A stretch of 64,000 bases of DNA, from NCBI GenBank assembly GCA_950097015.1, contig CATNEN010000002.1, positions 2,046,001 to 2,110,000 on the forward strand. The letters run 5' to 3'. Position numbers and translations under genes: made by a program. Within the stretch, counting starts at the first letter, position 1, and each line of letters opens with the position of its first letter. Of the stretch, positions 151 through 42,384 are shown piece after piece. This DNA is from Macrostomum hystrix (taxonomy: Eukaryota > Animalia > Platyhelminthes). Below the pieces are notes generated by a model. That model was given only the letters and a program-made list of their open reading frames with translations. It did no database searches and was not told the origin of the DNA.

Positions 151-988
151 GAAATGAAAGTGAAAACTCGGGGTGAGTGTTTATCTAATCTGTCTATTCT
201 TAGTTGCTTGACCTCTGGGCGAAAGTTTTCTCTCGAGTTCTTTTCAGATTTCTAAGTCTTATAAGTATGTTTCGAGACCACAGATGGGTAAACTGGTTTT
301 TAAATAGTGTGCAACACTCAATTATCATAAATGAGATAATCCAATTGCCCCAGGATGAGATAATCACATTATCACAGCATAAGAGAATCTTATTGTTACT
401 GCATTAGATGATCCCATTGTTACTTCATGTAATAATCCCATTATCACAGCATGTGATAATTACATTGTCACAGCCCTTATTGGCTTGTGCCAAGAGTCTA
501 AGTTGGTAAAAGCAGGCATTATCAATCATTTTCTTTGAGGTTACATTGTATTCTTATATAAATTAAAAAAATTAGTTAAATAAGTTTATAAAAAGAGTGT
601 CATAAAATTATAGGAGTCGCAAATATATTCACTAGGAATGAAACAGAAAATATTTTCCCGCATTAAAACATGGGCGTCATATTTTTCATTTAATTAAACG
701 ATGGACGGCCCAGCAGCTATAAGCGAAAGGTGCACACTCGTATTAACTAACTGCTGCCGCCGTGAAAGACCTTATTTGAGTCAAAATTTACGCCTAAAAT
801 GAACTTGGAAGCAATTATAAAGAAATCGGCACTCGAAAAGATCGGAATGTTTGTTGTAAAACAAAGTCAAGTTACTATGTTCTTACGAAGATAGTTCTAC
901 TATGTACTACTGAATAGAAAACAGGTGATATAAAGTCATTTCACTGCAACATATTTCAACCGCAATCAATGAAACTTTAGGAATTGTT

Positions 989-2086
989 TCATTGATTCCT
1001 TCGCCTCAATATGAAATAGGCAAAACCGAGAGCCATCGCCAGCGAGAGCGCAGTCGCTAGCGGAATAATAATATCCGCAATGTCCGGAGCTCGTGTGCTG
1101 GCCACCTCAGTGCAGTTGGTTCCGGTGAAGCCAGATAGACACTTGCAAGCGTAAGTCAGAGTTTCCTGCCGTTCCGGATCGCCGGATATCATGCAGAGGC
1201 CTCCGTTCTGACAGGGCAAAGATCGACAGGGGCTAGTGTTCTGGCAGACTTTTCCGAGAAATCCCGAAGCACAGTAACAATGATAGTTATACAAGCCTAG
1301 CCGGTTGGAACAGGTGCCTCCATTGAGGCAAGGTGGTCCAGTCTGAAGATTTTTGCAGGTGTCCCACTCATATCGACAAGTTCTTCCCTCGTATCCTCGA
1401 GTACAGTTGCACTTCGGATAAAGCAGGTCCCATTGCCGAAAGATGCAGACGCCGCTGTTTAGGCAGGGGCAATCTTGCTGCCGACAGCCGGGTCCAGAGT
1501 CTGGCAAGTCCTTCACTTTGATAGTCTTCAGGAAGTCCGTTTGGTTTAGCAGCTCCGATTTGGTGTGCAACGGCACTTTGACGATCTGGTCCAGACTCGC
1601 ATTGGCAATGCAGCCTCGATAATCATCGCCGATGTGAAAACTCGTACTTCTACCCCATGGAAATCGTCCAGTGAAGTTGCTTGGCAATCGCTCGACAAAC
1701 CGACCGTCCAACACGATCTGCCCACCGCCCTCTGTCTGCATTTTCAGGTGATGCCACTCTCCGTCGTTGATGACTGGTTCCTTCATGTTGATATATATTT
1801 TTGTGGACTCGTTGCTTACCTTCCAACTCAGTTTTACACGAAGCGTCGCATTTGATCCAGAAAAGTCCACCCCGATATACTCATTGTTACCGTTCATTAG
1901 AGTAATCAGAGCATATGGGGATCTGATGGAGGTGCGGAACTCCAGCTCAAATTGCTTCAGAAACGGCTCCGAAGTGTTCGGCGCTCTAATGAGTTTGTAG
2001 GATGCGAGGTTATCTATTGTGAAGGTGGCTACCTCCGCTCGGACTGCCACTGCCGCTAGCACCAGCATCAGAAGTGGAATGGACAT
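989..2086 (-). CDS. Intronless Crumbs-like type I membrane protein A1 (signal peptide, laminin-G, 3 EGF, TM, no cytoplasmic tail), 365 aa
   Basis: Open frame; first ATG at 2086 (the ORF-track start is TTG); signal MSIPLLMLVLAAVAVRA; LamG motifs LEFRT, NDGEWHHL, YRGCIANA; EGF repeats CLNGGTC...C.C..GF.G..C; TM DIIIPLATALSLAMALGFAYFIL followed by RRRNQ*. Confidence 0.85.
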   Translation of the reverse strand: MSIPLLMLVLAAVAVRAEVATFTIDNLASYKLIRAPNTSEPFLKQFELEFRTSIRSPYALITLMNGNNEYIGVDFSGSNATLRVKLSWKVSNESTKIYINMKEPVINDGEWHHLKMQTEGGGQIVLDGRFVERLPSNFTGRFPWGRSTSFHIGDDYRGCIANASLDQIVKVPLHTKSELLNQTDFLKTIKVKDLPDSGPGCRQQDCPCLNSGVCIFRQWDLLYPKCNCTRGYEGRTCRYEWDTCKNLQTGPPCLNGGTCSNRLGLYNYHCYCASGFLGKVCQNTSPCRSLPCQNGGLCMISGDPERQETLTYACKCLSGFTGTNCTEVASTRAPDIADIIIPLATALSLAMALGFAYFILRRRNQ

Positions 2087-4593
2087 GCTGATCTGAAGTT
2101 TGACGTTAATTGGACTAGCCAAGCTGGTCTAAATCTTAGGCAATGTGTTTTTTAGCCGTAGACTTTCAATGCTTGTCCCAGTGCCTGGTCTATCATTCGA
2201 TATTCAAGGTCGGTGATTTTGACGATAAGAGGCAGGCTTTTTAAGTGCGGCTAAGTCTCAGCATTATGTGTGGTCATATCTCCACGTCATTTCAGTAACG
2301 TACAAAAATTCAATATATCTATTGATAAAAAGCCACACATGATTCAAGACTCAGGTCTAAATTTAGTGATATACAGTGATCTTCGCAAAGCCCAGGCGTG
2401 CATAGCTTATCATATTTACTCTTAGAAAAAGAGCTGAAATATTTGGTATGAAATATCGAACAAAGGTCGGAGTGTACTGTGAAATTTGCTTTTAACAGGC
2501 TCTCTGGGCTTTCCAATCAAGAAAAAAATTCTTAAATTAAATTCAAGTAACTATTCAAAGACTTTATAGAAAAATTAGCAGACTGACCTAAAAAGTTAAT
2601 GATCGAAGCCATGCTACTGATCGTATTTCACCAATTTCCCATACTAATTAGTTAACAACTCAGGATTAGAAAATGTAGGCACTTACTCAGGTTACTTTCT
2701 ACTGCTTCAGCTTCTTAATCGGCCGAGTGTTTGTTTCTTGTTCAGGTGTTGCGTAGCCTCTCCTTAGTCGTCTGAGGGTGGTAGAACTGGCCGCTGTCAC
2801 GACTGTGCTCAAACTTAATCTATGGGTTGACCGATGACGAGAGTGAATAAGAATCCTTAACAATGTCTTCGAGCTTGGAATTCGCAATAGAACGTGCACC
2901 CAATTAAAATCGCCTAAAAGTTTGCCTAGTTCCTCAGGAAGGGTGTCTTCTTCGTTATGTCTGAAGCGCAAAGTGTATCTTTATTCAATCAATAAATCCT
3001 GTAAGCTCTGCAACCTGTGCGCAACAGCTCTGTATACAAGGCCTTTCTCAAATGCGTCGACGATATGCGGATCTCGTTAACGACTAAAGCTGGCTATAAA
3101 GAACTCAATTCATTAACACGCAAACCAAATTTATTGTATCAGAAATGAGTCTTGATTCTTCTTCTTTTGAAGTCTTCTTTGAATTCAAGTGGGCCGCTCA
3201 GAGTCTGAACTTTTCACTAAGGACTACTAAACAACACTAGTAGTAGTCCCTGCTTTATAGTCAAATTTTCGCTTGTAGTTTAAGGCATTTTTGGAGGAAA
3301 ACAGGTCCAAGACACATTATTTACTTAGGTCATGAATATTTGCATATTGGGGTCAAGCGTTTTTGCTCAACTGCATTATGGGGAGTTTCAGGTGAATGTT
3401 ACCATTTATGGAAGTGTTGGAAAAACTGCAGTTAAGAACCGTTTTGCCATTATGTAATATTCCTAAGTATCGTAAAGCCATGTCTAAAAATAGCATACGA
3501 GTCCTAAAAAAGATCATCAGTTATTGCTTACATTTACCCGTGACATTACTTTAAGTAGCATGTTGAGCATTCTACTCTCCACACAAGTAAGCAAACACAA
3601 CACAAGCATAGCTTGGATTAAATAAAAAATATTTATCAAAAGGTCAAACGAAGCAAATGCAACAGTAGTGCCACTGGAATGGTGCTATATGAGCGAAGGG
3701 GCGAAGAGAGCTATATGAACTCACACCTTTACTTGTGTGGAAGCAATTCCGGAGTTCTGGAGCGTCAGAAAAGTGTAATTCAACTGGCAACATTCTGAGG
3801 CGCGAGTTGATAACACACTTTGGCACTGAGAATTCGTTTTCCGATAATCAGATACTTATTCCGTGTGTTGTTGGAAAGAGCCTCGAAAGAAAGTTTCGCC
3901 TGCTGTGTCATACCAAGCGGCATGATGGGGGCGTTGGCGAAGTAATTGAGAAGGATGTGTAAGAGCGACCTCCCGCACCAAAGTGCGACATGAGCAATGT
4001 CTGTTAAACCGCGAGAAGACCTGCCAGAGTGCAGCGCCTGAACGATATCAACGAAACGATTCATGCTCCGGAGTCGGAGCATGCATCGCGATCCTTATTA
4101 ACGGTTCTCATGTTCTCCTCAAGATATTGATAAAATTCAAAATTATTGATAAAGTTTAATCTAAGCTGGAAAATGTAAAGTCTTTGTTTTCTTCTGCATC
4201 TGAGTTCGTGGACTACAAGCCGATCCAGCTCACATGGTGTCCTCACACGTAGAAATCTGAGCTACTCTTAGTACTCGTAGCTGCTCCCTTTCTTCATTGA
4301 TAAAGCCTAGTCGCTGACGATCATTTAATAAGACTCGCAAAATATTCTCAGGTATGAACAACTGTTTTTGCCCATAGTCTGAGTACATTTTCACGAGCAA
4401 ATGCGAAGTTTATTCATTGCGGACTAAAAACATGGGTTTAATTATTTTTTTGCGAAAACTCTGAAATGATTGCTCCGAGACGAGACGAGACCACCTGTAG
4501 GGAAATTAGGAGTCGTGGTCATCCACCTGAAGCCGCTTAAGGCGCGAAATAGTTGACGGGGCTTTGTTGTACAGGGCGAATTTATGAAACTTG

Positions 4594-4668
4594 ATTGGTA
4601 TGTGCCACAAGCAAATTGGTATGTGCCACAAGCAAATTGGTATGTGCCACAAGCAAATTGGTATGTGC
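4594..4668. repeat. 21-bp tandem repeat (about 3.5 copies) with four CCAAT boxes upstream of gene B1
   Basis: attggtatgtgccacaagcaa repeated; ATTGG = CCAAT on minus; about 200-280 bp before ATG 4871. Confidence 0.75.
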
Positions 4669-4870
4669 TTAGTATCTTATCTAGAGCAAGGCATTGCAAA
4701 AAATGTGCATGCGCTTACGTGGTGCAGTCAGCCCCGAGGTCCGTACTAATCGAGGCTAAAATATACGCTACCTGAGGACAATCTCTTTAAGTTGGCGCAT
4801 GTTACTCAGGCGCGATCGAAATCTGTCTGCTAAAAGCGACGAAGCTCAAGCTTACAGAAGAATTATTAGT

Positions 4871-6160
4871 ATGCAGCCTCGCCTGTTTATAGCAGTTATC
4901 TTGTTGTTTTCTGGAAGTGTCCACACATCATTATATTTGGCCATTAAAGATTTCGCTATTTCTTCAACACCGGAAAGCGGCACGTTTAATGAATCGAACT
5001 CAGCTCGGTTTCATCTCGCCGGTTCACCGACTGCCAACAAGACTCTGTTGGAACAAATAAAATTGAATTTTCGCACATCTCAAGCAAGCAATTCTTTCCT
5101 GTTCTCAATTGTCAATCAGCGAAACGAAACCTTTACAGTCCAGATTCAATCAGCTGATGAAGTTAAAGTGCGACTAATATATTTGCGAAATCCCGAAGGA
5201 CATAACGTTAGCGAACTGGCTTATGAAGAGCTCATCCGTCCGGCTCCAGGTGTTGCGAACGGCTCCTGGCACCATTTGACAATGACTGCAGAGAGCAATG
5301 GATCGCTAGTATATAACGGTGAAACAATCCAGGATGAGCTGTTGAAAAATTACACTTATTATTTTCCTTGGGACAATAGTACATCGATTGAAATAGCTGG
5401 CACATTCAGGGGCTGCTTTGCCAATGTCAGCCTTGATAACATAATATCGATGCCGCTTTCTTCGAAATCGGATCTGCTGAACATCACGGACTACCTGCGG
5501 CTGGACTCCACATCCAGGCTGCCAGAGGAGGCTGGGTGTCGTCAGGCGCCTTGTCCTTGCAAGCCGAACGGCATGTGCATCTACCGTCAGTGGGACTTGC
5601 TGGAAAGATGCAACTGCACCCGGGGCTACACACCCGAATCGATGTGCAAGAGCGAATGGAACACTTGCGAAAGTTTGGACATGGAACTACGATGCCAGAA
5701 TGGGGGTACCTGCTCCAACAAGCCAGGCGTCGAAAGTTATGAATGCAATTGCACCCAAGATTATCTGGGAACACGATGCCAGAGCTTCAATATTTGCCGA
5801 GCGTGTCAGAGCAACACTGTGAATTGCACTCTTACTGGCGACCTCGAGTGTCCGGAGTCACTCGATTACAACTGCATCTGTGCGTCAGGGTATTCCGGCA
5901 GAAATTGCACCGAGTTTGAGCTACAGCCGGGACTAGATATTACTCTAATAATTAGCGTCACAGTTGGCATCATAATTGCCATCCTTATTATCGCGATTGT
6001 TGCTTTCGTGGTCGCTAAGATCATCAGAGAGAGGCGTCGAGATTCCGGAGCGTATGGGCCAAGCCGACGAGAGGTGCAGGCGGGCAGAGACACAAGCATG
6101 GCAATGAGTCATCCGATGCGACCACCGAAAGACGAACGCATGGAAATATATTGTGAATAA
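4871..6160 (+). CDS. Intronless Crumbs-like type I membrane protein B1 (signal, laminin-G, 3 EGF, TM, Crumbs-like cytoplasmic tail), 429 aa from ATG 4871
   Basis: Open frame (an alternative upstream ATG lies at 4799); signal MQPRLFIAVILLFSG; LNFRT, NGSWHHL, FRGCFANV; three EGF repeats; TM; tail RERRRDSGAYGPSRRE...MRPPKDERMEIYCE resembles the Crumbs GTYSPSxQE...KPPPEERLI tail. Confidence 0.85.
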   Translation: MQPRLFIAVILLFSGSVHTSLYLAIKDFAISSTPESGTFNESNSARFHLAGSPTANKTLLEQIKLNFRTSQASNSFLFSIVNQRNETFTVQIQSADEVKVRLIYLRNPEGHNVSELAYEELIRPAPGVANGSWHHLTMTAESNGSLVYNGETIQDELLKNYTYYFPWDNSTSIEIAGTFRGCFANVSLDNIISMPLSSKSDLLNITDYLRLDSTSRLPEEAGCRQAPCPCKPNGMCIYRQWDLLERCNCTRGYTPESMCKSEWNTCESLDMELRCQNGGTCSNKPGVESYECNCTQDYLGTRCQSFNICRACQSNTVNCTLTGDLECPESLDYNCICASGYSGRNCTEFELQPGLDITLIISVTVGIIIAILIIAIVAFVVAKIIRERRRDSGAYGPSRREVQAGRDTSMAMSHPMRPPKDERMEIYCE

Positions 6161-6190
6161 ATATGTTCAGAACATGTGTAAATAACCGCA

Positions 6191-6540
6191 TAATAATAAT
6201 AATTGCAGGAGGGCTGTGGGCACATCATTTGGTGACACTAGACCCTCAGCCAGCGAGGAGACAATTCTGCCCACTTCGCTGACTCCTGAGCACACACGCA
6301 CACAGATACTGTACGCAGGCACAAGCTCACACAGGTGTGTACATCTGCCCTGACTTTCTCGTCGTCAAGTGTAAATTTCACAATGCCTTGGAGGTTAGCC
6401 CACAAGGGCGTAAATTGTAAGACAAGCCTCCAAGCCTTCTCTCCGCGGCTGCGCCCCAAAAAATGTGGCCTCGCCGCGGAATCGAGCTTCAGGACACAAA
6501 TGCGAGAGGCAAACGCGTTAACCCACTCTGCCTCCACCCC
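6191..6540 (-). mobile_element. tRNA-derived SINE, family 2
   Basis: Minus-strand head GGGGTGGAGGCAGAGTGGGTTAACGCG...GCTCGATTCC (A/B-box like); (TTA)n tail at 6191-6203; homologous pieces at about 27395-27540 and 54190-54410. Confidence 0.7.
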
Positions 6541-9029
6541 ATGTGTAGATAATAGGGACTTCAAAAAATTAGAAACTTTGAACTCTAATTTCCCGTTTTT
6601 CTTGCACTTTTTCGGTTCTAATTTTGCAGGCCTGACTGTTATTACTTTAACAATGCATGGACTTAAAATTCGTTGTATTTTTAACTGTAACAGTCTTCAT
6701 CTCGAATGTATTCATTTATTTATCTATTTTAAAATAACATTTGATGCGAAGTACCCAAAATGAGGCTTTCGTATGATGAATCGATTGTTTACGCAAAATT
6801 TTACTTTTTATCTTTTGATTTTTTTCTAAGATAACACTAATAATAATAATATATTATAGTGGAATAAGCCTAATCGAATGAAAACGTCGATAGTTTCTCT
6901 GACGTGAAGCGTGGTCGATGGAGCTCGTAATTTTTACAATACGCCAATGTTCAGCCAAGGTTCGCGCTTTAAACTGATTCAGAATATTTCGTTTTTTCGA
7001 GTTTTACGTTTTCGTGCATTTTTCGTTTCGTCGGATTTCGTAGAAAATTCCACGAGCGGTGTTTGACCAATTTTTGACTAAGGAAATCAGACCTACTTTC
7101 CTGACATAAACAAGAGCTACGAAAAAGACGAGCGAAAGGAGAGCCAGTTCAACTGATCAATTCAAAAGTCAATTTTCTGGTAGCGGTATAAAACTTTCGT
7201 AAAGTACGTTTCAGTTAAAATATTTCTCGGTTCCCACAACAATCAGACGTCGGCTCAAAGGCTCAAAGGCACAAATAGATTATTACATTCAAGGGAATGA
7301 TTTTCAGTTCACATAAATGTAAATTTTTAGGCAATCAAGCTAATGTTTCTAAACTTATTTATAAATAGTTTCACTATTTTACTTGCGCACTAGTTGCCAG
7401 TTTACCGAATAAAATTTCTAGGAGGCCTCGATCGAGGCCAGCCTGGGAGGTTGAAACATGCGACTCGATAACTCATCCGTTTGATCTATCCGTTCTATCC
7501 CTCAAAACGTCCACCTCCGCTTCCCATTGTTCTGGTTCGCTCGAGCGAGACGAAAGCTTATTCTAAAAATGTCCTTTAAAATTTTCGCAAATCCTTGCCT
7601 TGGTACTTTTGCCAAATGTAACTTGAATTTATTTATCTTCTCGTTGTAACCTTAAAGATGTGTGTTTTAATAAATAATTATTGTAATTATTTAGCAAAAG
7701 CATAATTAATGAGCCTATTACGTTACTATTATCTAATACAAGCTACCTCACCCACCCCCAAGCATACTGTGCCGCGTCGTGCGAATCAGAACGTGGCAGT
7801 GCTCGGTTGTGCACTTTGGATGGTCAAGGCTGGGTCAACGGAGACTTTCCATCACGGTTCACGCGCGTGATGCGTGTTTTCTACCCTACACAATCCCATC
7901 GCTTTTCCTACAAAGAAGACACCCTCGGGTCATGCCTGACCGATACCTGACCTGCAGTACAGCTGCGACTTGATTGAGCCAGACTCAGGGTATTTGCTCT
8001 TACTTTAGACCACATTGGGCTAATATAATTATTGCCAGTTTTTAGTCACTGCTCAGGGTTGTCAAATAGCTAAATCCAATTCTTTTGTCTGTTTCCCCTG
8101 CTCACTTAAGCAGGCAGGCTGGTGAGTAAAGAGTCATTGCGATCCAAGAGGAGTTTACTGGCAGGCTAAATAAAAAAATAGATTAAGCAATAATGAAACT
8201 CTAATATCACTACTAACAGCAGTACAGTTTGCACACAGCCGCATTCTTGAGAGGTTAGGCTTTCACCAACGAAACGCGGCACAGACCTTGTAAGAAGGGA
8301 TCGAGCCTCTATAATTAAACTTTAGCAAGTTCCTCACCCCAAGCTGAGGTAGGATTGGGTAATCTAAAAAATAACCCCCCTATGCGAAAGACCTTGCTTC
8401 CAGCACTGACCAGGACAGCCAGAAAATGCCCAACATAGAGTCCCTCTAGCGGCCATTATTCTCTTTCTTTCTGGCCTCAATATTAGCCTCGTTAGGTTTT
8501 AGTTATGGAGTGTGGTTGCAGAACTACTCTAAGTAGTCCCTACCCTAATACTCCCTTGCCTAGAATTAGAGTAGGCAATGGACCTTCGCCAATCGGACCA
8601 CAAACAAGCTACCAATCATCACTAGGGCGGGTGACACTGGGGAGAGTAAGGCCAGATCCCCTCCCACTTTAGGATCAGCACTGCAGTGGGATTTCCAGCC
8701 TTCGCATCGAGCCATCCACGGGTTTGATTAAATTAATTAACGATTGATTAGCAAGTAATTTAGACGCGAGAAAAGCATAGCCAAGTCAAAAAACTAATGT
8801 CTGAATTACCTGAAAAGTGATAAAGAGGCTTTATTATCTTCGCCGTTAGTTTTTACTCTGGAACTTTTTCTCCACTAAAGCACCGTGTGAAAACAGAGAA
8901 AACAGAAATTCAGGTAGATAATGCGTTTGATAAGACACGGACAAACTTAAAGATATAAAATGAAATGTGCAGACACCCTAATTACATTATCGCTTGTCTG
9001 AACAGTTCACATCAAATTTCTGCCAGAGA

Positions 9030-9261
9030 ATGTCATCTGCTCAACTGCTAATCATTCTGACCTTCGGCATCATCGGGTTCGCTGCTTCAGGCTTCGGCGA
9101 GTTGCATCCGGAGTCAGCCACGTTCAACACGACACAGAAAAGTCGAGTTTCGGCTAGGCCCACCACCTGAGGGAAGTGGATCTGAGCTACTCCTTCGAAT
9201 CGATATCGATTTTCGAACATATCCCATTGCACAGATGCGACCCATTGCGCGCGTCCCATGA
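9030..9261 (+). pseudogene. 5' remnant of a fourth, divergent mini-Crumbs paralog (frameshifted, truncated)
   Basis: MSSAQLLIILTFGIIGFAASGFGELHPESATFNTTQK, then after a +1 shift in an AAAA run VEFRLGPPPEGSGSELLLRIDIDFRTY. This aligns to B1 ESGTFNESNSARFHLAGSP...LLEQIKLNFRTS. Confidence 0.6.
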
Positions 9262-9734
9262 GCAAAAAATTCTATTGTAAGAAAACAAACTTAGAATGGA
9301 ATTTCATACAGAAAAATGCATTTCTAACGTTAAAAGAATTTTATTTACCTGATGTTTTTCCCTCAGGAGACTTTTACAATTTTTTCTAAACGCATATGTT
9401 CTTATAACTAAGTATTCTAAATTATTGAAAACAAGCTTAGACTTACAATTCAATCTAAAAATATTAAACAAAGGCATTCCAGGATGCTGTAATCGTGATT
9501 GACTGAAGTGCAGCGACTTTTATATTGAACTTCTCAAAAATTACTTTGTTTTACTGCTGTCGCTAAAATGCCGTTTTTAGGCAGTTTAAATCATTTTAAG
9601 CTATTTTAAGTTCGATTCCATTTAAGAACTAGTCTTGTAGTTCTACTATGTACTACTGAACAGAAAACAGGTGATATAAAGTCATTTCACTGCAACATAT
9701 TTCAACCGCAATCAATGAAACTTTAAGAATTGTT

Positions 9735-10844
9735 TCATTGATTCTTTCGCCTGAATATGAAATAGGCAAAACCGAGAGCCATCGCCAGACCGCACAGCGA
9801 GAGCACAGTCGCTAGCGGAACAATAATATGCGCAATGTCCTGAGCTGGTGCTCGTGTGCTGGCCACCTCAGTGCAGTTGGTTCCGGTGAAGCCAGATAGA
9901 CACTCGCAAGCGTAAGTCAGAGTTTCCTGCCGTTCCGGATCGCCAGATATCATGCAGAGGCCTCCGTTCTGACAGGGCAAAGATCGACAGGGGCTAGTGT
10001 TCTGGCAGACTTTTCCGAGAAATCCCGAAGCACAGTAACAATGATAGTTATACAAGCCTAGCCGGTTGGAACAGGTGCCTCCATTAAGGCAAGGTGGCCC
10101 AGTCTGAAGATTTTTGCAGGTGTCCCACTCATATTGACAAGTGCTTCCCTCGTATCCTCGAGTACAGTTGCACCGATCAAGCAGGTCCCATTGCCGAAAG
10201 ATGCAGACGCCGCTGTTTAGGCAGGGGCAATCTTGCTGCCGACACCCGGGTCCAGAGTCTGGCAAGTCCTTCACTTTGATAGTCTTCAGGAAGTCCGTTT
10301 GGTTTAGCAGCTCCGATTTGGTGTACAACGGCACTTTGACGATCTGGTCCAGACTCGCATTGGCAATGCAGCCTCGATAATCATCGCCGATGTGAAAACT
10401 CGTATTTCTACCCCATGGAAATCGTCCAGTGAAGTTGCTTGGCAATTGCTCGACAAACCGACCGTCCAACACGATCTGCCCACCGCCCTCTGTCTGCATT
10501 TTCAGGTGATGCCACTCTCCGTCGTTGATGACTGGTTCGTTCATGAAGATTTTTGTTAGCGTGGACTTATTGTTTACATTCCAAGTCAGAATAATACGAA
10601 GCGTCGCATTTGCTTTAGAAAAGTCGATGACGATATCTTCGTTGTTATCATTTTCCAAAAAAATCAGAAAATATGGGCTTCTAGAAGAGGTTCGGAACTC
10701 CAGCTCAAATTGCTTCAAAAACGGCTCCGAAGTGTTCGGCGCTCTAATGAGTTTGTAGGATGCGAAGTTATCTCTTTTGAAGGTGGCTACCTCCGCTCGG
10801 ACTGCCACTGCCGCTAGCACCAGCATCAGAAGTGGAATGGACAT
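9735..10844 (-). CDS. Intronless Crumbs-like membrane protein A2 (paralog of A1, tail-less), 369 aa
   Basis: Open frame, same architecture as 989..2086; ends RRKNQ*. Confidence 0.85.
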   Translation of the reverse strand: MSIPLLMLVLAAVAVRAEVATFKRDNFASYKLIRAPNTSEPFLKQFELEFRTSSRSPYFLIFLENDNNEDIVIDFSKANATLRIILTWNVNNKSTLTKIFMNEPVINDGEWHHLKMQTEGGGQIVLDGRFVEQLPSNFTGRFPWGRNTSFHIGDDYRGCIANASLDQIVKVPLYTKSELLNQTDFLKTIKVKDLPDSGPGCRQQDCPCLNSGVCIFRQWDLLDRCNCTRGYEGSTCQYEWDTCKNLQTGPPCLNGGTCSNRLGLYNYHCYCASGFLGKVCQNTSPCRSLPCQNGGLCMISGDPERQETLTYACECLSGFTGTNCTEVASTRAPAQDIAHIIVPLATVLSLCGLAMALGFAYFIFRRKNQ

Positions 10845-11409
10845 GCTGATCTGAAGTTTGACGTTAATTGGACTAGCCAAGCTGGTCTAAATCTTAGGCA
10901 ATGTGTTTTTTAGCCGTAGACTTTCAATGCTTGTCCCAGTGCCTGGTCTATCATTCGATATTCAAGGTCGGTGATTTTGACGATAAGAGGCAGGCTTTTT
11001 AAGGGCGGCTCAGCATTATGTGTGGTCGTATCTCTAAGTTATTTCGGTAATGTACAAAAATTCAATATATCTATTGATAAAAAGGTACACATGACTCAAG
11101 ACTCGGGTCTAAATTTAGTGATATACAGTGATCTTCGCAAAGCCCAGGCGTGCATAGCTTATCATATTTACTCTTAGAAAGAGAGCTGAAATATTTGGTA
11201 TGAAATATCAAACAAAGGACGGATTGTACTGTGAAATTTGCTTTTAACAGGCTCTCTGGACTTTCCGATCAAGAAAACAATTTCTTAAATAAAATTCAAG
11301 CAAGCATTCAAAGACTTTATTGAAAAATTAGCAGACTGACCTAAGAATTGATAATCGAAGCCATGCTACTGATCGTATTTCACCAATTTCAGATACCACT
11401 TAGTTAACA

Positions 11410-14169
11410 TATTTTATGTTATTATATTTAGACTTATTAGTGACTTATTGTATTTGCACTCCGGTGCAAGTATATGCCGCGACCTCCCGCCCAGTGGTGA
11501 AGTCGGCGAGCCGCGCTTAACTGCTGCGGCGGCCAACAGCGGCAGGACCAAGCGGGGGCAGCGCAGCGCCCGGCGGCGAGAGCGCCGTTGAGCGGTTGAA
11601 CGCCGTCGTGAGCGCAATCGGCGAGGTCGACAGCGTGGCGCTGCTCGCCGAGCCGCAACTCTCCGCGGTCCAATGGATCTTCCGGGTGGCGCCGGGGACC
11701 AACTGACTCAGCAACACCGAGAATCAGCCATACCACAGGGCACGCTCAGGGTCGGGACGCTGAACTGCCGCACCCTCAAAGCCACCTGGCGGAGAGGACT
11801 GCTGGCGAAGCTAGCGCACGACCTGAGCTGCGTTGTCATCGCGCTGCAAGAGGTGTCCATCAGGGCGGAACCAGGGCTCCACTGCGAAGACCTGGGTGCC
11901 GGATGGACTCTCCACTACTCATCAGCGGACCACCGCAGTCGTGGAGGAGTCGGCGCGCTGATCGGACCGAGGCTGCAGAAGAGCTGTCGCTGCGTCTCCC
12001 TGTCCCCTCGGCTACTTCGGGTGGACGTCCGGCTTGGCGGCCGGAACGCTCGCCTTTTCTGCGGTTAAGCGCCCCCTGCCACTCGGCCCGATGAGGCTCA
12101 AGATTTCTTCGAGCAACTCTCGGTGCAGTTGGAGGCGATGGCGCAGCGAGACACAGTGGTTGTCCTCGGAGACCTGAACGCAGTTCCGCGTAGGTCCGAG
12201 CGATCGATGTTTGTTCCGCCCCGCGAGAACGGCAATACCGAAGCGCTGGAGGACTTCCTGGAGAGGCAGGACATGGTGTCGGCCAACACCCGCTTCCGCA
12301 AGCCATCTGGCAGGCTCGTGACCTTCGTGGGCTGCAAACGGAGGCGGCGGAACGCGCGCGGCCGGTACGAAACACGGAGGCTGGCACAGCTCGACCACGT
12401 GCTTGTGCGCTTCCGGGAGCGCCGCCGCGCCATCAACTGCCGCACCATCACGCCGCTGGCTCTGCTGTCCGAAGATCGGCTACTCATCTGCGACCTGCGA
12501 GTGCGAGATCCGCTCTACCGTCTGCCGAAGCGGCCACCGCGGCGCTACTACCGCTCAGGAACGCCGACACGCACCGCCGCTTTGCTAGCCATCGTTAACG
12601 CGCCGCCCCCCCCGCTGCCAGGCAACCTGACGCTGCCACCAGAGACGCCGTTGCCGGCAGAGGAAAGCTTTAGCATAGCACCCGTCAGCACAGACGACGT
12701 TGTGACGCTCGCCCAGAAGACTCCGGGCGGCAAGGCGCTGGGTCCAGACGAGGTGCCCATCGAGGCGCTGCGCATTCACTGTGTGGCCAGTAAGTCGCCA
12801 GTGCGATGAACCGCGTGCTCTTCGGTGTGGCGGCGCCCAACGAATGGACCACGGCGCACATCGTCGCTATTCCTAAGAAGCCGGGCACCACAAGGCTAGA
12901 GGAGCACCGAGGGATCTGCCTTCAGTCCTGCGCTGCGAAGCTGTTCAACCGGATGCTGCTATCGCGGTTGCAGCTCGTGCTGGACCCGTATCTGCGACCC
13001 GAGCAGAACGGCTTCCGGCTTCACCGCGACACAGTGACGCAGATCCTAGCTCTTCGCCATGTCATCGAGGAGGCGCGAACTCGCCAGTTGTCCTCGCCCT
13101 GGTGCTTCGAGCGTACAAAGTGCCAGAGCAGCTGGTGTCCGCCATCATGGCTTTGTACTGCCACACAACTGCTGCTTTGTCAACTCAGGACGGCCTATCG
13201 GACTTCTTCGAGACATCCTCCGGGGTGCTCCAGGGGGATACGCTGGCGCCGTTCTTGTTCATCCTAGTGCTTGACTGTGTGCTGCGAACTGCTCTTCCGA
13301 CTGACAACGATGGCCTTCTGCTGCGGCGACGCGTGGGTCGACGTCAACCAGAGAAACGGCTCAGTGTGCTTGGCTACGCCGACGATCTCGCCCTGCTGTG
13401 CTCGACCGTCGAGGGCGCTCAGCGCCAGCTGGACAGGCTGGTCGGCGCTGCGGCGAGCATAGGCCTGGTGGTCAACACGCAGAAGACCGTAGTGCTCTGC
13501 GTGCCCGGCGACATCGAGGCTGCAATTTACTGCCGAGGCGCTGACGGGCAGGCAACTGAGCTCCCAAGATACCAGCAGTTCGTCTACCTCGGCGCTCTGG
13601 TACCAGACGCTCGTGACGATTTGCGGCGTCGCCGCGGGCTTGCTTGGGCGGCCTTCCGTTCCGTGAGGATCGTTCTGCAGTCCGAGGCCCTACCTGACCG
13701 TCAGAGGGCGGCGTTGTTCCGGGCGGTGATCGAGACCGTCCTCTTGTAGCGCCGAGACCTGGACGCTGACGGACTCGCTTGAACATCAGGTCGACGCGGC
13801 GCACGCTGGCCTGCTGCGCGCTGCCTTTAAGATCGACGACCAGCGAGTCTCCAATGCGGCACTCTACCGCCGCACCGGCCTGGCCCTGCCAAGCGAACTT
13901 CTGCGCCATCGGCGACTCCAGCTTGCAGGCCATGTCATCCGCGCTGAGTCGAACTGCCCAGAGCCGGTGCAGGAAGTCCTGCTGCTCACGGTACAAGCAC
14001 CCTACCGGCGAGGACAGGCGCAACCGGCGCTACGTCGACTGCCTGCTGGATGATGCCGGCGCTCCGGACTCTGCCGGTGGCGCGGCCTTCGTTCGCGCCC
14101 AGGCCCTCAAGCGCGCCCTGTGACGCTGTACTAGACTCTGACAGCGTACTATGTTGTTATGTTGTTGTT
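11410..14169 (+). mobile_element. RTE-clade non-LTR retrotransposon, decayed (APE endonuclease + reverse transcriptase)
   Basis: EN motifs GTLNCRTL, ALQEV, VLGDLNA, LDHVLV; RT motifs EQNGFR, QGDTLAPFLF, YADD; several stops and frameshifts; (GTT)n tail; 7-bp TSD GTTAACA at 11403-11409 and 14170-14176; empty site at about 2650 in copy 1. Confidence 0.9.
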
Positions 14170-14644
14170 GTTAACAACTCAGGATTAGAAAATATAGACA
14201 CTTACTCTGAAGCACAAGGCGAATCTTAATTCAATCAACAAATCATCTACTGCTCTGTAACCTGTATGCTATGGCTCTGTATAGCTCTGTTTACAAGGCC
14301 TTTCTCAAATGCGTCGACGATATGGGGATCTCGTTCAGCTGCATTTTGGGGAGTTTCAGGTGAACCTTAACATATACGGAAGTGTTGGAAAAACTGCAGT
14401 TAAGAACCGTTTTGCCATTGTGTAATTTTCCCAAGTACCATAAAGCCATGTCTAAAAATAGCATATGAGTCTTAAAAAAGATTAGCAGTTATTGCTTACA
14501 TTTACCCGTGACATTACTTTAAGTAGCACGTTGAGCATTCTACAACTAAGCAAACACAAGTATAACTTCAATTAAATAAAATATAATTATCGAAAGGTCA
14601 AACGAAGCAAATGCAACAATAGTGCCACTGGAATGGTGCTATAT

Positions 14645-17600
14645 TATTATTATTATTATTATTAAAACGCGCACGCCATCTATCGGTGCTGATTTTTTTT
14701 AATATATATTTTTTAACAACACATTTAAATGAACAACGAAAAGCAACATAAAAAGCGAAGTTTAGTAGGAATCAAATATCGAGCTGGGAAGGGAAAGCAA
14801 AGGTATTAAAAATAAGAGCAGTAAAAACACAAGGGACGCCAGGGATAAAACAAATTATGAAATATCTATTGTTGAATGCTAGTAAAATCTCGTAGTCTCA
14901 GGGCAGCTGTTCCCTTATTTTAGATATTTCTATGATGTATTTTGCTAAAGCTTCAGCGGTTTCCCTATCGTCTTGAGCCATTATGTAGTTAGATTTTTCT
15001 TCTGCTGTTAAGGATATGAAATTGGGGGTTTTCCCAGAAACTTCCGTCTCAAATTTCGAACGTGCTGCGCTATACTTATTCCAAGTGCACTTAAAAAGGA
15101 AGTGGACCTCGTTTTCAACTTCTGTTTTGCACTTACTACATAATCTATTTACATACGGAATTATCGGTCTCGCAGTTCGCAATGTTTCGCAAGCTAGCTT
15201 ATGGTTTCCTAGTCTAAACGAGGCTATGGTACGTCTCAACTCCGGGTTGTATATTTGTTGTAAATATTTTTCGGCTGAATAATATTGCTTGAAGGAGTAA
15301 TAGAAGTGACTTAGCTTGCTTGAGTTCTGTGTCCTTTGTCTCCAATGGGTATCGAACTGAGAAACGAAATTTTTCCTGTGGTTTTGGAATAGTCGCGGGT
15401 TTGCAATCCGATGATCTGTCCTCGTGGAGGAAAGGAGTGTGGGGATGGCGATAGAGTCAGAAGTCGTACCGCAAAGTCCCGCGAGTTGCCGCGGAAAGAG
15501 GGATGAAGGGAGAGATGAAGGGAGAGACAGTGGATGCAGGGAGTGGTCCTCTCGGCCTCAGGCTGGCCAGTCCCACTCAACCCATAGGCCACAGGCATGA
15601 CTGCCGTGCCTACCCCAAGCAGTGCTCGAAACCGGCTAAAAGTCTAAATAGATGTCGGACTACCCGCAAACGGATAGGACAGGGCTATGCAGCCTACTGT
15701 CATCAGTAGCATGTTCGTAACTGACCCCCAAACTCGGTAGCAGTGGTCGACTCGGCCTAGGCTCTTGTCTTAGAAATGTGGAAAGGCTATCGGCAAGCGG
15801 AAAATGATCTAGGGTAGCGCCACCACCCAATGCGCCTACGTTGCCACCGCAGACATTTGGGAACTTGGGTCCCCGGAGCTCGCGGCTCCTAGTTTGTCAC
15901 ACAGATCTTAGACAAGCCGAAAAAATAGAGCCTTCTGTAACTTCCGTTTTAGACTAGGGTGAAGACCCCAGAATGGATCGAGACACGCCTCACCAGGGGA
16001 TTCCTGAAATTGCGCTACAGTGGTCTAGAAAGGTGGTACTCAGAACCTGAAAGAGAAACCCATAGCCAGAATCCTACTCATGGAACATCAGACACATTCT
16101 GTACATTAGACTGCAGCCTACACATTAGATAACTAGCAATCCGAGTCTGTGTGAGTTGAGGAAAACAGAGGCAGGGGAGATTAAGCTGAACACTGGCTGA
16201 GTGATTATGCGAGCGTAAGATTAAAAGATCATCACCCCCCACTCCCTTGGCGGTGGAAGCGAGAGGGGGGGAACGGAAGGGAAACTCAATTGGCAGAGGA
16301 GCTTGACACGCACTCCCAGTTCCGCCAGGAAACGAGGAAAACCCGCCAAGGAATTCCCCACCCCTGGGCAGAAAGACAACACGTGCTACACCCCGCATTT
16401 TACTTGCAAATCCCTAGCTCCATATTGCTCTCATACGCGCTTACAATTTCCTTCCTGCCGCAGCTTTCAGCTCGGCTGTGCCAGAGCCCATTCCCCTAAT
16501 AGATTAGCCACTCATGGTAGAGGGCTGTCTAAGGTTAAAATAAAGGTGAAAAGGAGACATAATAAGAGAAGTTAAGTTGTTATAAAGTTAAGCCCAATAA
16601 GTTAAAAGTGCTTAGATTGGATAGTTTATTAGGCGAAAAAGTTCCTAGCTTCCCTCCCACTAAATGCCGCCTAACTAATAGAAAGCCCCTTAGGAGCAAT
16701 AATTGCAAACCGCTGCGCGGATTACTTATCTGGACGCTTCGGCCGCGTGCTGCAATCCCGTTGTTCTCGGGGAAGGGGACGGGGTAAGACAGTAAAAGCC
16801 GGGAAGGGAAAGATGCTGCGAGTCGGCAGGGGGCCAACACGCTTGGAGCTCAAGGCTCAATTTAACAGCTCACCTAAAGAGGTGGCTCGCGCTCAGGGGG
16901 AACGGGGACAGGCAATGGGCCTGCACTAACTGTGGAGCTATGAGCTCTAGGGTCTATGCCCTAACTGGGTCTGGGGGATAAGTCCTGGGTCCGGTGGGAG
17001 TCCGGCCCGGCAAAAGTAAGTCCGGCAGGGGAGAAGGGGAAGAGCCGGTGGGAGAAAAGAGGTCCTAGAGGGAGCAGCGCCGCGCGCTTGCTTAAATAGG
17101 CCTTGCAGCACGCCAACCCCGACATCCATCAAAGCAACCCACATTCGCGCCCGCCTGTCAACGGGGAATCGAAGCGACGACAGGCCGCCCCAATTGCCCA
17201 ATGGACCGGCGGCGGGAAACGACAGGTGCTCATCGAGAGCAGCCATCGGCAGACGGCCAACAATTGTTACTCCGCCGGGACAATGGAAGCGCAGGCGCCG
17301 ACCTGCCTACAGTGATATTTACATGTATCTAAAGGAAGGAGGTCATAAAGTCGAGCTGGGCTCGAATACTGTAAAGAAGCGGGGACATGAAGAATTTTAT
17401 GATCACTCATAACGCGTGAGTGAGCCCCTATATCTGATCGCGGTTTGGAGGGGAATTATGACCTAAACTAGTTCATACAGTAACATTATGGCCGCGATCA
17501 GTCATTCCTACGGGGAGTCTAGACAACTCCGGAGAGAGAGGATTCGACAGCTACTTGATTCACCGCCGCCTCAAACCCGGCCCTAAGATTAATGATCTTG

Positions 17601-17831
17601 TTTTGTGACCAGCTGCTGGGTGGGTCGCAATTATTAGTTACTTAAAAATTTGAAAAATTATGCTGGCTCACATTCCCACTCGATTCCAGCAGCACACCCC
17701 ACATCAGTTTCCAATTGCTTTTGCAGGACTAATGCCTCTGCAGTTCAGCATAACCTCATTGTTGGTCTTTGCTTTGATTCCAACATCACTGTATGTTTGG
17801 TCCGCCAATAACTTGGAAATTATGGAGTCCG
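14645..17831 (-). mobile_element. 5'-truncated LINE (3' end of ORF2 with CCHC-type knuckle), split by a nested insertion
   Basis: Minus-strand peptide ...HWRQRTQNSSKLSHFYYSFK..EKYL..RRTIASFRLGNHKL..RLCSKC..ENEVHFLFKC; upstream part SSWSQNKIINLRAGF at about 17550-17620; (TAA)n tail at 14645; TATAT TSD at 14640-14644 and 17832-17836; empty site at about 3687 in copy 1. Confidence 0.8.
15416..17550. mobile_element. Unclassified 2.1-kb non-coding insertion nested in the LINE
   Basis: Removing it rejoins the LINE frame (GFEAAVNQVDHRIANPRLF); termini CTGTC...GACAG; no clear TSD; no credible ORF. Confidence 0.55.
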
Positions 17832-18725
17832 TATATGAGCGAAGGGGCGAAGAGAGCTATATGAACTCACACCTTTACTTGTGTGGAAGCAATTCCGGAG
17901 TTCTGTAGCGTCAGAAAAGTGTAATTCAACTGGCAACATTCTGAGGCGCGAGTTGATAACACACTTTGGCACTGAGAATTCGTTTTCCGATAATCAGATA
18001 CTTATTCCGTGTGTTGTTGGAAAGAGCCTCGACAGAAATTTTCGCCTGCTGTGTCATACCAAGCGGCATGATGGGGGCGTTGGCGAAGTAATTGAGAAGG
18101 ATGTGTAAGAGCGGCCTCCCGCACCAACGTGCGACATGAGCAATGTCTGTTAGACCGCGCGAGAAGACCTGCCAGAGTGCAGCGCCTGAACGATATCAAC
18201 GAAACGATTCATGCTCCGGAGTCGGAGCATGCATCGCGATCCTTATTAACGGTTCTCATGTTCTCCTCAAGATATTGATAAAATTCAAAATTATTGATAA
18301 AGTTTAATCTAAGCTGGAAAATGTAAAGTCTTTGTTTTCTTCTGCATCTGTTCGTGGACTACAAGCCGATCCAGCTCACATGGTGTCCTCACACGTAGAA
18401 ATCTGAGCTACTCTTAGTACCGTAGCTGCTCCCTTTCTTCATTGATAAAGCCTAGTCGCTGACGATCATTTCATAAGACTCGCAAAATATTCTCAGGCAT
18501 GAACAATAGTCTGAGTACATTTTCACGAGCAAATGCGAAGTTTATTCATTGCGGGCTAAAAACATGGGTTTAATTATTTTTTTGCGAAAACTCTGAAATG
18601 ATTGCTCCGAGACGAGACGAGACCACGTGTAGGGAAATTAGGAGTCGTGGTCATCCACCTGAAGCCGCTTAAGGCGCGAAATAGTTGACGGGGCTTTGTT
18701 GTACAGGGCGAATTTATGAAACTTG

Positions 18726-18800
18726 ATTGGTATGTGCCACAAGCAAATTGGTATGTGCCACAAGCAAATTGGTATGTGCCACAAGCAAATTGGTATGTGC
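18726..18800. repeat. 21-bp tandem repeat, duplicate of 4594..4668
   Basis: Same unit and copy number as in duplication copy 1. Confidence 0.75.
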
Positions 18801-19002
18801 TTAGTATCTTATCTAGAGCAAGGCATTGCAAAAAATGTGCATGCGCTTACGTGGTGCAGTCAGCCCCGAGGTCCGTACTAATCGAGGCTAAAATATACGC
18901 TACCTGAGGACAATCTCTTTAAGTTGGCGCATGTTACTCAGGCGCGATCGAAATCTGTCAGCTAAAAGCGACGAAGCTCAAGCTTACAGAAGAATTATTA
19001 GT

Positions 19003-19360
19003 ATGCAGCCTCGCCTGTTTATAGCAGTTATCTTGTTGTTTTCTGGAAGTGTCCACACATCATTATATTTGGCCATTAAAGATTTCGATATTTCTTCAAC
19101 ACCGGAAAGCGGCACGTTTAATGAATCGAACTCAGCTCGGTTTCATCTTGCCGGTTCACCGACTGCCAACAAGACTCTGTTGGAACAAATAAATTTGAAT
19201 TTTCGCACATCTCAAGCAAGCAATTCTTTCCTGTTCTCAATTGTCAATCAGCGAAACGAAACCTTTACAGTCCAGATTCAATCAGCTGATGAAGTTAAAG
19301 TGCGACTAATATATTTGCGAAATCCCGAAGGACATAACGTTAGCGAACTGGCTTATGAAG
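19003..19360 (+). pseudogene. Truncated duplicate of gene B1 (B2; first 119 codons only)
   Basis: Near-identical to 4871..5228 (2 aa changes); homology ends at 'tatgaag' 19360, and the frame then stops at 19422 with no EGF or TM segment. Confidence 0.8.
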
Positions 19361-20471: not shown

Positions 20472-28979
<8,508 letters not shown>

Positions 28980-30027
28980 TAGCTCCTGGGATGACTCTGT
29001 GAGTTCACTGCTCACAGGATATTAATAACTAGATCGCACTCGATTGTATCATTCTGTGGCATCGCTGTCTCGTGTTCCATAAACTCATTTGATAGGCTAT
29101 CGACTGAACCAGCTTAGCATCTAATAAACTGATAAAATAGTTGTTTCCCCTACTGGAGTAGATTAGCAATCCATATGAGATTAATCGATGTTTAGTATTC
29201 CTGATTAAAAAAATTTTTTTTTTAAACAATTAAGCACCAACTTTTCATTTTTTTTAGTTTTGTTGCTTCCTGCCTGCAATCTAATTTTGTCTGCGCGCTG
29301 TTTTGAGAGAAAATATTATTCAAAATCTGCACAAGCATGGTTTGAATGAGAACAATTCTGTTGGGCGTCATCTTTTATTTTTGTGTTCCCATAACCAACC
29401 AATCGTCCCTTTGTGTAGTCAGGTTATTATTGCACCAGTCATTTGTGCGCTCATACACAAATGTACTTTTATTAAATATAAAGAAAGCTTTTGTTATTCC
29501 AGAATTCAAGTCCATCTTGCAGTCTCTCCATATACTTCTAAGTCTTATTTAACAGGAACACATCTACAGCCAAGATGCTTGTTCAACCTTTGGCCATAGA
29601 CAGCGCTCTAATGTACTTTTATTTTATATAACTATTGTTATTAAAATTATTACTAAGCCCATGTCCGCTCGCTATTCGTCACTTTTGTAATCATTGATTT
29701 CCACGGCATTTCCAATGCACTGTGCAAGCCTGTTATAAACAATATTATCTATCTTTATTGTTACTATTATTAATATTATTATTCCATTTCTTGACGATAT
29801 GGCGGCGGCAGTTTAAGAGTCAGTTGTCTATGGCTTTTCTGATCTGGCATCCCAGCCAATCAGCCCCACGTTTCATTTTGCCGCAACTTAAGATGCTGAC
29901 AAATAAAAATCTTGAAATATAAAATATGAAATTGGTAGTCCCTCTTTTGCTATCTTTATTAATACACCTCCAGTGAAGTTCACAGTTTCCAGAATACTGA
30001 CAGATTGGCCTTTTTAATTTTATTTAT

Positions 30028-30622
30028 TGTCTTATCTATCCAGTGTCCTCTCTCCTGTATTATCTATCCAGTGTCCTTCTCTCTCCTGTCTTATCTATCC
30101 AGTGTCCTTCTCTCTCCAGTCTTATCTATCCAGTGTCCTTCTCTCTCCTGTTTTATCTATCCAGTGTCCTCTCTCCTGTATTATCTATCCAGTGTCCTTC
30201 TCTCTCCTGTCTTATCTATCCAGTGTCCTTCTCTCTCCAGTCTTATCTATCCAGTGTCCTTCTCTCTCCTGTTTTATCTATCCAGTGTCCTCTCTCCTGT
30301 ATTATCTATCCAGTGTCCTTCTCTCTCCTGTCTTATCTATCCAGTGTCCTTCTCTCTCCAGTCTTATCTATCCAGTGTCCTTCTCTCTCCTGTTTTATCT
30401 ATCCAGTGTCCTCTCTCCTGTATTATCTATCCAGTGTCCTCTCTCCTGTTTTATCTATCCAGTGTCCTCTCTCCTGTATTATCTATCCAGTGTCCTCTCT
30501 CCTGTATTATCTATCCAGTGTCCTCTCTCCTGTCTTATCTATCCAGTGTCCTCTCTCCTGTCTTATCTATCCAGTGTCCTCTCTCCTGTATTATCTATCT
30601 AGTGTCCTCTCTCCAGTCTTAT
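30028..30622. repeat. 25-27-bp minisatellite
   Basis: tatctatccagtgtcctctctcctg units. Confidence 0.9.
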
Positions 30623-30749
30623 CTCGACAGGCCTCGCCCATTATTAGCGATTAACTGCCCGGAAAAAAGCCTCGACCAATTATAATGGCTTACTGAGGCA
30701 AAAATGTCTATAGCACAAAAAATTGATGCCCATGTCGCTTGCACTCAAA

Positions 30750-31201
30750 GAGAGAAGAATGCTACGCTCTGCGGCGTGGCACTGGAGACGCCGACATCCA
30801 CGAAGACGCTCGAGTCGTAGCCTGCAGCACATTAGCAGTGGGTGCGAACCTGTATAATTTCAAGCTTTCAAATTACTAGATAACTTGGCTCCCTCGCTAT
30901 TGAACTCGACGGATTCCGCTTTCCACAGCTGCATCTGGCCGCACACCAAGTTTCTCTTGCTGGTCACTTCATCTTCACTCATCACCCAGGCTGCGCGGAG
31001 CTTCAGGCCCTCGCTGCTCATCAGCTTCCTGCTCAAAGTCATGAAGTTGACGGCTCTGGCATTGGCAAACACGGCACATCTACGCAGTGTCCCGACTCCA
31101 TTGGTAGCTAGGGCATCGATAAGGTGGCACACGGCAATGTATGGGAACAGCGAGCACTGGCGAGTGGCCGATCGAGTTGTGAAGCTTCGAGATTTTGAAA
31201 A
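30750..31201 (+). pseudogene. Possible degraded fragment resembling the mitochondrial ArgRS (RARS2) C-terminal DALR region
   Basis: High-GC3 frames EDARVVACSTLAVGANLYNFKLSNY*ITW and LITQAARSFRPSLLISFLLKVMKLTALA loosely recall RARS2 ETAERVGLAALI..LLSDYKFSW and [20 protein letters not shown]. An equally GC3-rich minus-strand frame (30860-31132) also exists. Confidence 0.25.
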
Positions 31202-42019: not shown

Positions 42020-42384
42020 GCGGAATGCCGCAAAAGTGCTCATGAAGGATTATGACCATTTTTATCCATTTACTCTAGCAAATGAAAATATTTCTGATAT
42101 TATTATTCAGTAAGTGTATCCAAATTGCGGTCATACGTGCATCTCAATTGATCTTTTGTTTGTTAAGATTTTTTACCAATGAGCAAATCGTTCCACTGAT
42201 TTAAATTATATTATTTCAATATGTTACATAGTACATGTTATCATTTAATATTGAAATTTGAATATGATGATTTTATTATTATGAAAACAATAAAGCGTAA
42301 AAGGTACGAGTGCTTAAAAGGCTAGGGACCAAGTGTACACTGACACTATCCTTTCTTCCCTCATTCACGTTTCCTTCATTCTAA

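Follow-up and report, generated by a model that had tools for sequence, protein, structure and literature searches.

The first 20 kb of a 64-kb stretch of the genome of the flatworm Macrostomum hystrix hold pairs of small single-exon genes transcribed away from each other, one of each pair without a cytoplasmic tail and the other of a type whose tail resembles that of Crumbs. This raises the question of whether these genes descend from Crumbs, and whether their pairing reflects a receptor system. The stretch, called the window below, spans C2:2046001-2110000 of an assembly of ~220 Mb in 42 contigs (PMC10468722); C2 denotes the contig of the window, and C1, C26, C33 and C39 the other contigs named here. 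We conclude that the window probably contains two tandem copies of one block, each with two divergently oriented single-exon genes that belong to a flatworm-specific offshoot of Crumbs. This offshoot is best read as a short Crumbs paralogue that expanded by lineage-specific birth and death and lost its tail in three of four lineages within the clade on C2.

The family is represented in the window by three complete open reading frames (ORFs) and one fragment, all within the first 20 kb (Table 1). The tail-less genes are called A1 and A2, the tailed gene B1 and the fragment B2; A2 is 89% identical to A1. Further members in the genome are A_L004, A_L008, B_L002, C_L003, D_L009 and L010. No other copy is found in the 64-kb window, either by sensitive tblastn or by a filter-free (--max) hidden Markov model (HMM) scan, both covering six frames. 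The original prediction had placed three intact single-exon genes and two remnants here. A1, B1 and A2 are confirmed as ORFs at their predicted places, and the divergent orientation of A1/B1 and A2/B2 holds as well, but only one remnant, B2, lies in the window; a second, frame-broken one is found elsewhere on C2. The predicted order of signal peptide, LamG, three EGF and transmembrane (TM) segment in the intact genes is confirmed by hydropathy, cysteine pattern, Pfam EGF matches and a structure model. All family members possess a hydrophobic signal-like N-terminal segment and a single strong TM segment near the C-terminus, and A1, B1 and A2 each contain a LamG region and three six-cysteine EGF units. 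The signal peptide of B1 probably starts at M25. Cysteines number 20-23 in the three-EGF members, while L010 and the M. lignano protein orthologous to it have 15; those of LamG, EGF1 and EGF2 are all invariant across the family. There are 8-16 N-glycosylation sequons per member, with four in the divergent D_L009. Behind the TM segment, A1 and A2 end, as had been noted, in a stub of five residues (RRRNQ or RRKNQ), while 40-48 residues, counted from the TM hydropathy peak, follow in B1, B_L002 and L010. C_L003 and D_L009 have no Crumbs-type cytoplasmic domain of ~37-40 residues directly after the TM segment.

The Crumbs family is defined by the TM segment and a conserved intracellular domain (PMC4359734), and it is the tail of type B that ties the genes of the window to this family. 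A Crumbs-tail profile was made from 32 Crumbs proteins obtained in an exhaustive profile search, using the C-terminal 42 residues of each. This profile scores B_L002 at 31.0 bits, B1 at 25.6 bits and L010 at 17.9 bits; the last exons of the genome's own long Crumbs genes reach 32-33 bits and its CRB3-like gene 29.0 bits. Of the other retrieved proteins, all that carry no Crumbs-like tail motif stay below 2 bits. The only sequence match of the B1 and L010 tails in the PDB is the intracellular domain of Drosophila Crumbs (4wsi/4yl8), and the alignment runs end to end, taking in the juxtamembrane arginines, GxYxPS and the C-terminus. Among 1.84 billion proteins searched with the family profile, ~40 of the best 150 matches are Crumbs proteins ending in ERLI, and many of these align through to their own C-terminus. 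The FERM-binding motif GxYxPSxxE reads GAYGPSRRE in B1 and GAYRPSRRE in B_L002. At the same site L010 has GVYKPYDRE, with the serine changed to tyrosine, and its M. lignano orthologue GVYKPSDRE; the motif is absent from types A, C and D. The segments from the juxtamembrane region to the tail are closely alike in B and L010 (juxtamembrane KIIRERRRDSGAY vs KIVRDRRKDSGVY). Judged by sequence, type B carries a genuine Crumbs intracellular domain as its tail, and the tails of B and L010 are clearly homologous. The link to Crumbs that had been drawn from the tail is thereby upheld, both by the sole PDB match and by a tail profile that rates B as high as the own long Crumbs genes.

The end of B1 itself is altered. 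The predicted tail GAYGPSRRE...RPPKDERM is present in the sequence, but it does not stop at DERM, and the frame continues to ...DERMEIYCE. B_L002, a paralogue 96% identical to B1 (C2:1097092-1098447), ends ...MRPPKDERLI-stop. Alignment of the 3' ends reveals an 18-bp deletion in B1, by which the codons for L, I and stop and 9 nt of 3' sequence are gone; B1 therefore ends ...KDERMEIYCE. The ERLI end is shared by L010, the M. lignano orthologue of L010 and all Crumbs proteins, which makes the deletion in B1 a derived change. None of the window copies has a C-terminal ERLI (B1 altered, B2 truncated, A1 and A2 tail-less), and within the short family of this genome it is found only in B_L002 and L010, both outside the window. 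Downstream of the stop codons of types A, C and D, no relic of a Crumbs tail is seen in any frame.

Is B1 then the Crumbs gene of this genome? The pattern P-x-[DE]-E-R-L-I-stop matches the genome five times and its reversed control not at all. The five matches are two long spliced Crumbs genes, a CRB3-like gene, L010 and B_L002. In both long genes, which were read exon by exon and not as spliced models, EGF and LamG exons are followed by a LamG-EGF-TM exon and then by the tail exon, so that an intron splits the TM segment from the intracellular domain. With these long genes and the CRB3-like gene present, B1 is not the sole Crumbs/CRB3-like orthologue, a possibility that had been raised against the existence of an expansion. 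Protein and LamG-profile searches of the genome count nine full-length members of the short family, plus B2 and the frame-broken remnant. Eight genes form a clade on C2, within which only type B retains the tail. A maximum-likelihood tree separates (L010, M. lignano orthologue) from (D_L009, (C_L003, B, A)), both main clades with 100% support. Since the tails of B and L010 are homologous, the ancestor of the C2 clade would have borne a tail, which was lost or replaced in D, C and A.

Outside this genome, L010 has a 56% identical orthologue in M. lignano (BOX15_Mlig032429g1, P0043), which is annotated as a hypothetical protein and is likewise encoded in a single exon. Like L010, this protein of 403 residues comprises signal peptide, LamG, two EGF, a Ser/Thr/Pro-rich stalk, TM segment and the end ...RPPNEERLI; it is of the L010 type, not of the A/B type. 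Beyond the genome, M. lignano included, word-based and exhaustive profile searches of protein databases recover no protein of type A, B, C or D in full length, and word-based searches with B1 and A2 return EGF-level matches only and no full-length relatives. The nine full-length short members and the lack of full-length A/B relatives in these searches bear out the lineage-specific expansion of short Crumbs-type genes that had been proposed. The original prediction knew of no description of such a family, and our search of the literature on Crumbs in Macrostomum or other flatworms found none either.

The short proteins share with Crumbs, CRB1 and CRB2 the type-I topology, LamG followed by EGF before the TM segment, an intracellular domain of ~40 residues with GxYxPSxxE and, in B_L002 and L010, the PDZ-binding end ERLI. 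Unlike long Crumbs proteins (2-4 LamG, ~19-30 EGF, 1400-2500 residues), they have one LamG and two or three EGF in 365-453 residues. They also differ from the long Crumbs genes of their own genome in having a single coding exon with no intron between TM segment and intracellular domain, and in the loss of the tail in most members. Reduced Crumbs proteins have been described before: C. elegans EAT-20 has 808 residues with three EGF, and in CRB3 and CRB-3 the ectodomain is nearly absent (PMC4359734). Like EAT-20, CRB-3 and mammalian CRB3, the flatworm proteins combine a reduced ectodomain with a conserved tail and would be Crumbs paralogues. In contrast to EAT-20 and CRB3, they retain one LamG, and their ~ten loci and stable tail-less derivatives are described for neither. 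Short members of the family are already known. The flatworm genes form a lineage-specific branch of this well-known family that is unusual but does not amount to a new kind of system. As a separate observation, two proteins from public read assemblies, P0001 (521 residues) and P0174 (563 residues), show EGF repeats, a TM segment and a Crumbs-type tail ending in ERLI. They are weak matches and might derive from incomplete transcripts; current annotation may understate how widespread short Crumbs-like forms are.

For the ectodomain, Pfam places EGF above threshold, and in A and B it places Laminin_G_2 just below threshold; in L010, Laminin_G_2 is above threshold (29.5 vs 22.9 bits). The AlphaFold2 model of B1 has a predicted local distance difference test score (pLDDT) of 80-90 over residues 60-240, and these residues match neurexin LNS, agrin LG3 and laminin LG domains (Foldseek against the PDB, target template-modelling scores ~0.6). 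The best overall structural match of the model is a Celsr LamG/EGF region. The Foldseek search of the PDB thus confirms an LG fold. To our knowledge no Crumbs ectodomain structure has been solved, and because of this the search is unable to discriminate a Crumbs origin of the LamG. An HMM of the family LamG alone scores best on Crumbs LamGs, but within a biased hit set, and the LamG-only profile run against the own genome does not reach the LamGs of the long Crumbs genes.

The pairs in the window are parts of a larger duplicated block. Window positions 892-2657 match 9638-11409 at 93%, and 3686-5228 match 17832-19360 at 98%. Furthermore, 561-8961 is found inverted at C2:1094264-1102678 with 89-97% identity, 0.94 Mb from the window copies. 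All three A-B pairs are thus copies of one block, and the alignments indicate a single origin of the head-to-head pair followed by duplication of the whole block. Whether the A/B layout recurs had been named as a check of the prediction; it does occur three times, but all three pairs are segmental duplicates. Passive copying of a layout with a single origin yields no independent evidence for the pairing, however often the layout recurs. For A_L008, C_L003 and D_L009, no tailed partner is found in the retrieved flanks or among the genome-wide family matches. The ectodomains of A and B are 40-42% identical, and the two types form separate long-branched clades in the tree.

Rates of substitution differ with the age of the copies. 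The ratio of non-synonymous to synonymous rates (dN/dS) is 0.15 between L010 and its M. lignano orthologue and ~0.4 between the A copies and A_L008 (dS ~0.5), and it rises to 0.69-0.95 among A1, A2 and A_L004 and to 0.83 for B1/B_L002. These ratios indicate that the older tail-less lineage is constrained and that the young copies are near neutral. All three indels between A1 and A2 are in frame, and no core cysteine of LamG or EGF is lost. In one patch of A1, 49 residues long, the proportions of synonymous (pS) and non-synonymous (pN) differences are 0.385 and 0.213 vs ~0.03-0.04 outside, ~10x and 6-7x. Because synonymous divergence is raised along with non-synonymous divergence, we read the patch as a mosaic or gene-conversion tract. 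Positive selection on point mutations was considered for this patch and rejected, as synonymous sites are raised at least equally. No donor of the patch is found in the assembly.

Several points weigh against descent of these genes from Crumbs and against the expansion as we read it. The family LamG matches the LamGs of the own Crumbs genes at an E-value of only ~0.01 in a local --max search, and a LamG-only Atlas search returned generic LamG clusters; the LamG appears assignable only generically and not specifically to Crumbs. The predicted derivation of the ectodomain from a Crumbs C-terminal cassette is accordingly backed weakly, by this E-value and by a LamG that looks generic when taken alone. 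The PDB matches of the tails have E-values of 0.4-0.7, individually marginal for queries of 45 residues. The root of the tree is assumed (midpoint, with the L010 clade as outgroup), and the absence of A and B from other Macrostomum rests on databases that may omit close relatives. A dN/dS near 1 in the recent copies is also the pattern of young pseudogenes, and any or all of the window copies could be silent. The generic character of the LamG, its bare match to the own Crumbs LamGs and the Celsr region as best overall structural match would all be expected of an unrelated LamG-EGF family, neurexin-, Celsr- or Notch-like, whose Crumbs-like tail had come from convergence or exon capture. However, convergence or capture would have to produce a tail that matches over its full length, with the basic juxtamembrane run, GxYxPSxxE, the spacing and the RPPxxERLI end all in place. 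The order LamG-EGF-TM-intracellular domain is moreover that of the last part of the long Crumbs genes, the juxtamembrane-to-tail segments of B and L010 are closely alike, and Crumbs proteins dominate the profile matches that align through to the C-terminus. We consider an origin outside Crumbs extremely improbable.

The tailed/tail-less pairing had also been compared with paired or decoy receptors. Paired activating/inhibitory and decoy immune receptors, such as KIR, Ly49, SIRP and the decoys TNFR/IL-1R2, are by analogy adjacent paralogues, one with a signalling tail and the other without. In a system of this kind, a shared bidirectional promoter would co-regulate A and B, and A would compete with or modulate B via a ligand or via the B ectodomain. 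The divergent orientation and the ~2.7-kb spacer are indeed kept in all three block copies, A has a complete ectodomain and TM segment with only the five-residue cytoplasmic stub, and its frame has been kept open under moderate constraint, as seen against A_L008. But at only ~40% identity the ectodomains fall well short of the nearly identical ones of classical paired receptors, the layout originated once and spread by passive copying, and A_L008, C_L003 and D_L009 stand unpaired. Two of the three pairs have no fully competent tailed partner (end of B1 lost, B2 truncated), the TM segment of A has no charged residue for adaptor recruitment, and neither an ITIM (immunoreceptor tyrosine-based inhibitory motif) nor the charged-TM logic of the immune receptors is present. 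With the terminal LI of B1 gone, no complete Crumbs tail remains in the window, and the receptor-pair reading is therefore unsupported; we regard it as very unlikely. Crumbs-Crumbs ectodomain interactions occur in flies and fish, and by analogy the A proteins might act as genomically linked antagonists or co-receptors of B, transcribed from the shared spacer and working through LamG/EGF contacts. This idea is a very doubtful one; if true, a polarity protein would have given rise to a tunable, rapidly evolving apical-surface module. The decay of the blocks can also be taken further, such that A1, A2, B1 and B2 are merely young non-functional debris of neutral birth and death and only L010, B_L002 and A_L008 are functional. 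The near-neutral ratios of the recent copies, the truncation of B2, the missing ERLI of B1 and the transposons inside the A2-B2 spacer all speak for this. Nevertheless, the three full copies keep open frames with in-frame indels and intact core cysteines, although ~28 substitutions outside the patch would make a stop or frameshift fairly likely under pure neutrality. That all four are debris seems unlikely to us.

The expansion of a short Crumbs paralogue by birth and death would then have the following history. An ancestral short Crumbs with signal peptide, LamG, EGFs, TM segment and a tail of ~40 residues, represented today by L010 and its M. lignano orthologue, would have given rise to the eight-gene clade on C2. 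Type B alone in this clade would have kept the intracellular domain; A, C_L003 and D_L009 would now carry in its place either a stub or a short tail of unrelated sequence. One head-to-head A-B pair would subsequently have been multiplied to three block copies, which would now be diverging almost neutrally and decaying, as suggested by the truncation of B2, a long interspersed nuclear element (LINE) in the A2-B2 spacer, the loss of the terminal LI from B1 and a patch in A1 from a diverged donor. A retrocopy had been proposed as the starting point. It fits the missing intron, as A, B and L010 are uninterrupted at the point where an intron separates the LamG-EGF-TM exon of the long Crumbs genes from the intracellular-domain exon; no poly(A) or other relic supports it. 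The missing intron is, however, weak evidence for retrocopying because large exons are common in this genome. Downstream of B1, B_L002 and L010 there is no A-tract, while target-site duplications were not searched; old retrocopy events would have lost poly(A) and target-site marks.

As to function, B_L002 and L010 carry the FERM- and PDZ-binding motifs on a type-I membrane protein, all that Crumbs/CRB3-like work would need. The intact B_L002 (C2:1.097 Mb) would act like Crumbs/CRB3 as an apical type-I membrane protein, its ERLI recruiting the PDZ domains of PALS1/Stardust and Par6 and its GxYxPSxxE binding FERM proteins; both this localisation and these partners are inferred. A search of the genome for the L27_N domain family of PALS1 was silent, but so was its control. 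B1 could at most keep the FERM-binding half of this capacity. The A proteins would be membrane-anchored ectodomains without Crumbs signalling capacity. Since the A frames have been kept open from before the split of A_L008, a function of their own is probable, and on sequence grounds this is probably at the cell surface, in adhesion or ligand binding via LamG/EGF. The apical polarity determinant Crumbs is deeply conserved and as a rule occurs in one to three copies. A set of ~ten fast-evolving loci, in which three of four C2-clade lineages have lost or replaced the conserved tail and kept the ectodomain, would offer a natural experiment on what the poorly understood Crumbs ectodomain does by itself, and a clear example of turnover in a polarity-gene family of flatworms. 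For annotation, B_L002 and L010 should be named Crumbs-like and B1 flagged as having no PDZ-binding end, and annotators should not treat the A/B pair as an established receptor system.

Table 1. Features of the short Crumbs-type family in the window and related genes elsewhere in the genome. Positions without a contig label are those of the window.
Feature	Position	Strand	Description
A1, tail-less	ORF 989-2122, probable ATG at 2086, stop 989-991	-	365 residues, single exon, stub RRRNQ
Mosaic patch in A1 LamG	1781-1927	-	72% identical to A2 vs ~96% elsewhere
A1-B1 divergent spacer	2087-4798		~2.7 kb, duplicated along with both genes; also in the inverted copy, C2:1098447-1101178
B1, tailed	4799-6160	+	453 residues, single exon, Crumbs-type intracellular domain
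18-bp deletion junction in B1	6137/6138	+	relative to B_L002, from DNA alignment of the 3' ends
A2, tail-less	ORF 9735-10880, ATG at 10844, stop 9735-9737	-	369 residues, single exon
Degenerate non-LTR (long terminal repeat) retrotransposon in A2-B2 spacer	11673-14123	+	endonuclease and RVT_1 pieces in different frames, 64% GC
Second insert in A2-B2 spacer	14645-17831		~3.2 kb, no counterpart in A1-B1 spacer
B2, B-gene remnant	18931-19359	+	first 143 codons, 98.6% identical to B1; homology ends abruptly at 19360
Duplication unit i	561-8961		A1, spacer, B1 and 2.8 kb downstream
Duplication unit ii	9638-19360		A2, insertion-broken spacer, truncated B2
Frame-broken remnant	C2:1093364-1094228	-	pieces correspond to profile positions 63-161, 171-229 and 345-381; adjoins the inverted A-B block
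Long Crumbs gene	C1 ~20.904-20.92 Mb (~20904000-20920000)	-	spliced, separate tail exon ending ERLI
Long Crumbs gene	C26 ~175000-182150	+	spliced, separate tail exon ending ERLI
CRB3-like gene	C33:3396238-3396567	+	109 residues, single exon
L010, short Crumbs	C39		387 residues: signal peptide, LamG, 2 EGF, Ser/Thr/Pro-rich stalk, TM, ...RPPNEERLI

The second insert of the A2-B2 spacer is bounded by homology to the A1-B1 spacer, in that 3367-3690 corresponds to 14335-14644 and the match resumes with 3686 at 17832. An ORF at 14898-15239 on the minus strand resembles the C-terminal end of another LINE ORF2 and has no Pfam match. The introns of the Crumbs gene on C1 are packed with tandem repeats. 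Long arrays of tandem repeats or satellites, strongly skewed in GC and AT, occupy much of the remaining window, at ~28000-44500 and 50000-53000; their periods are roughly 60-210 bp as read from self-BLAST ladders.

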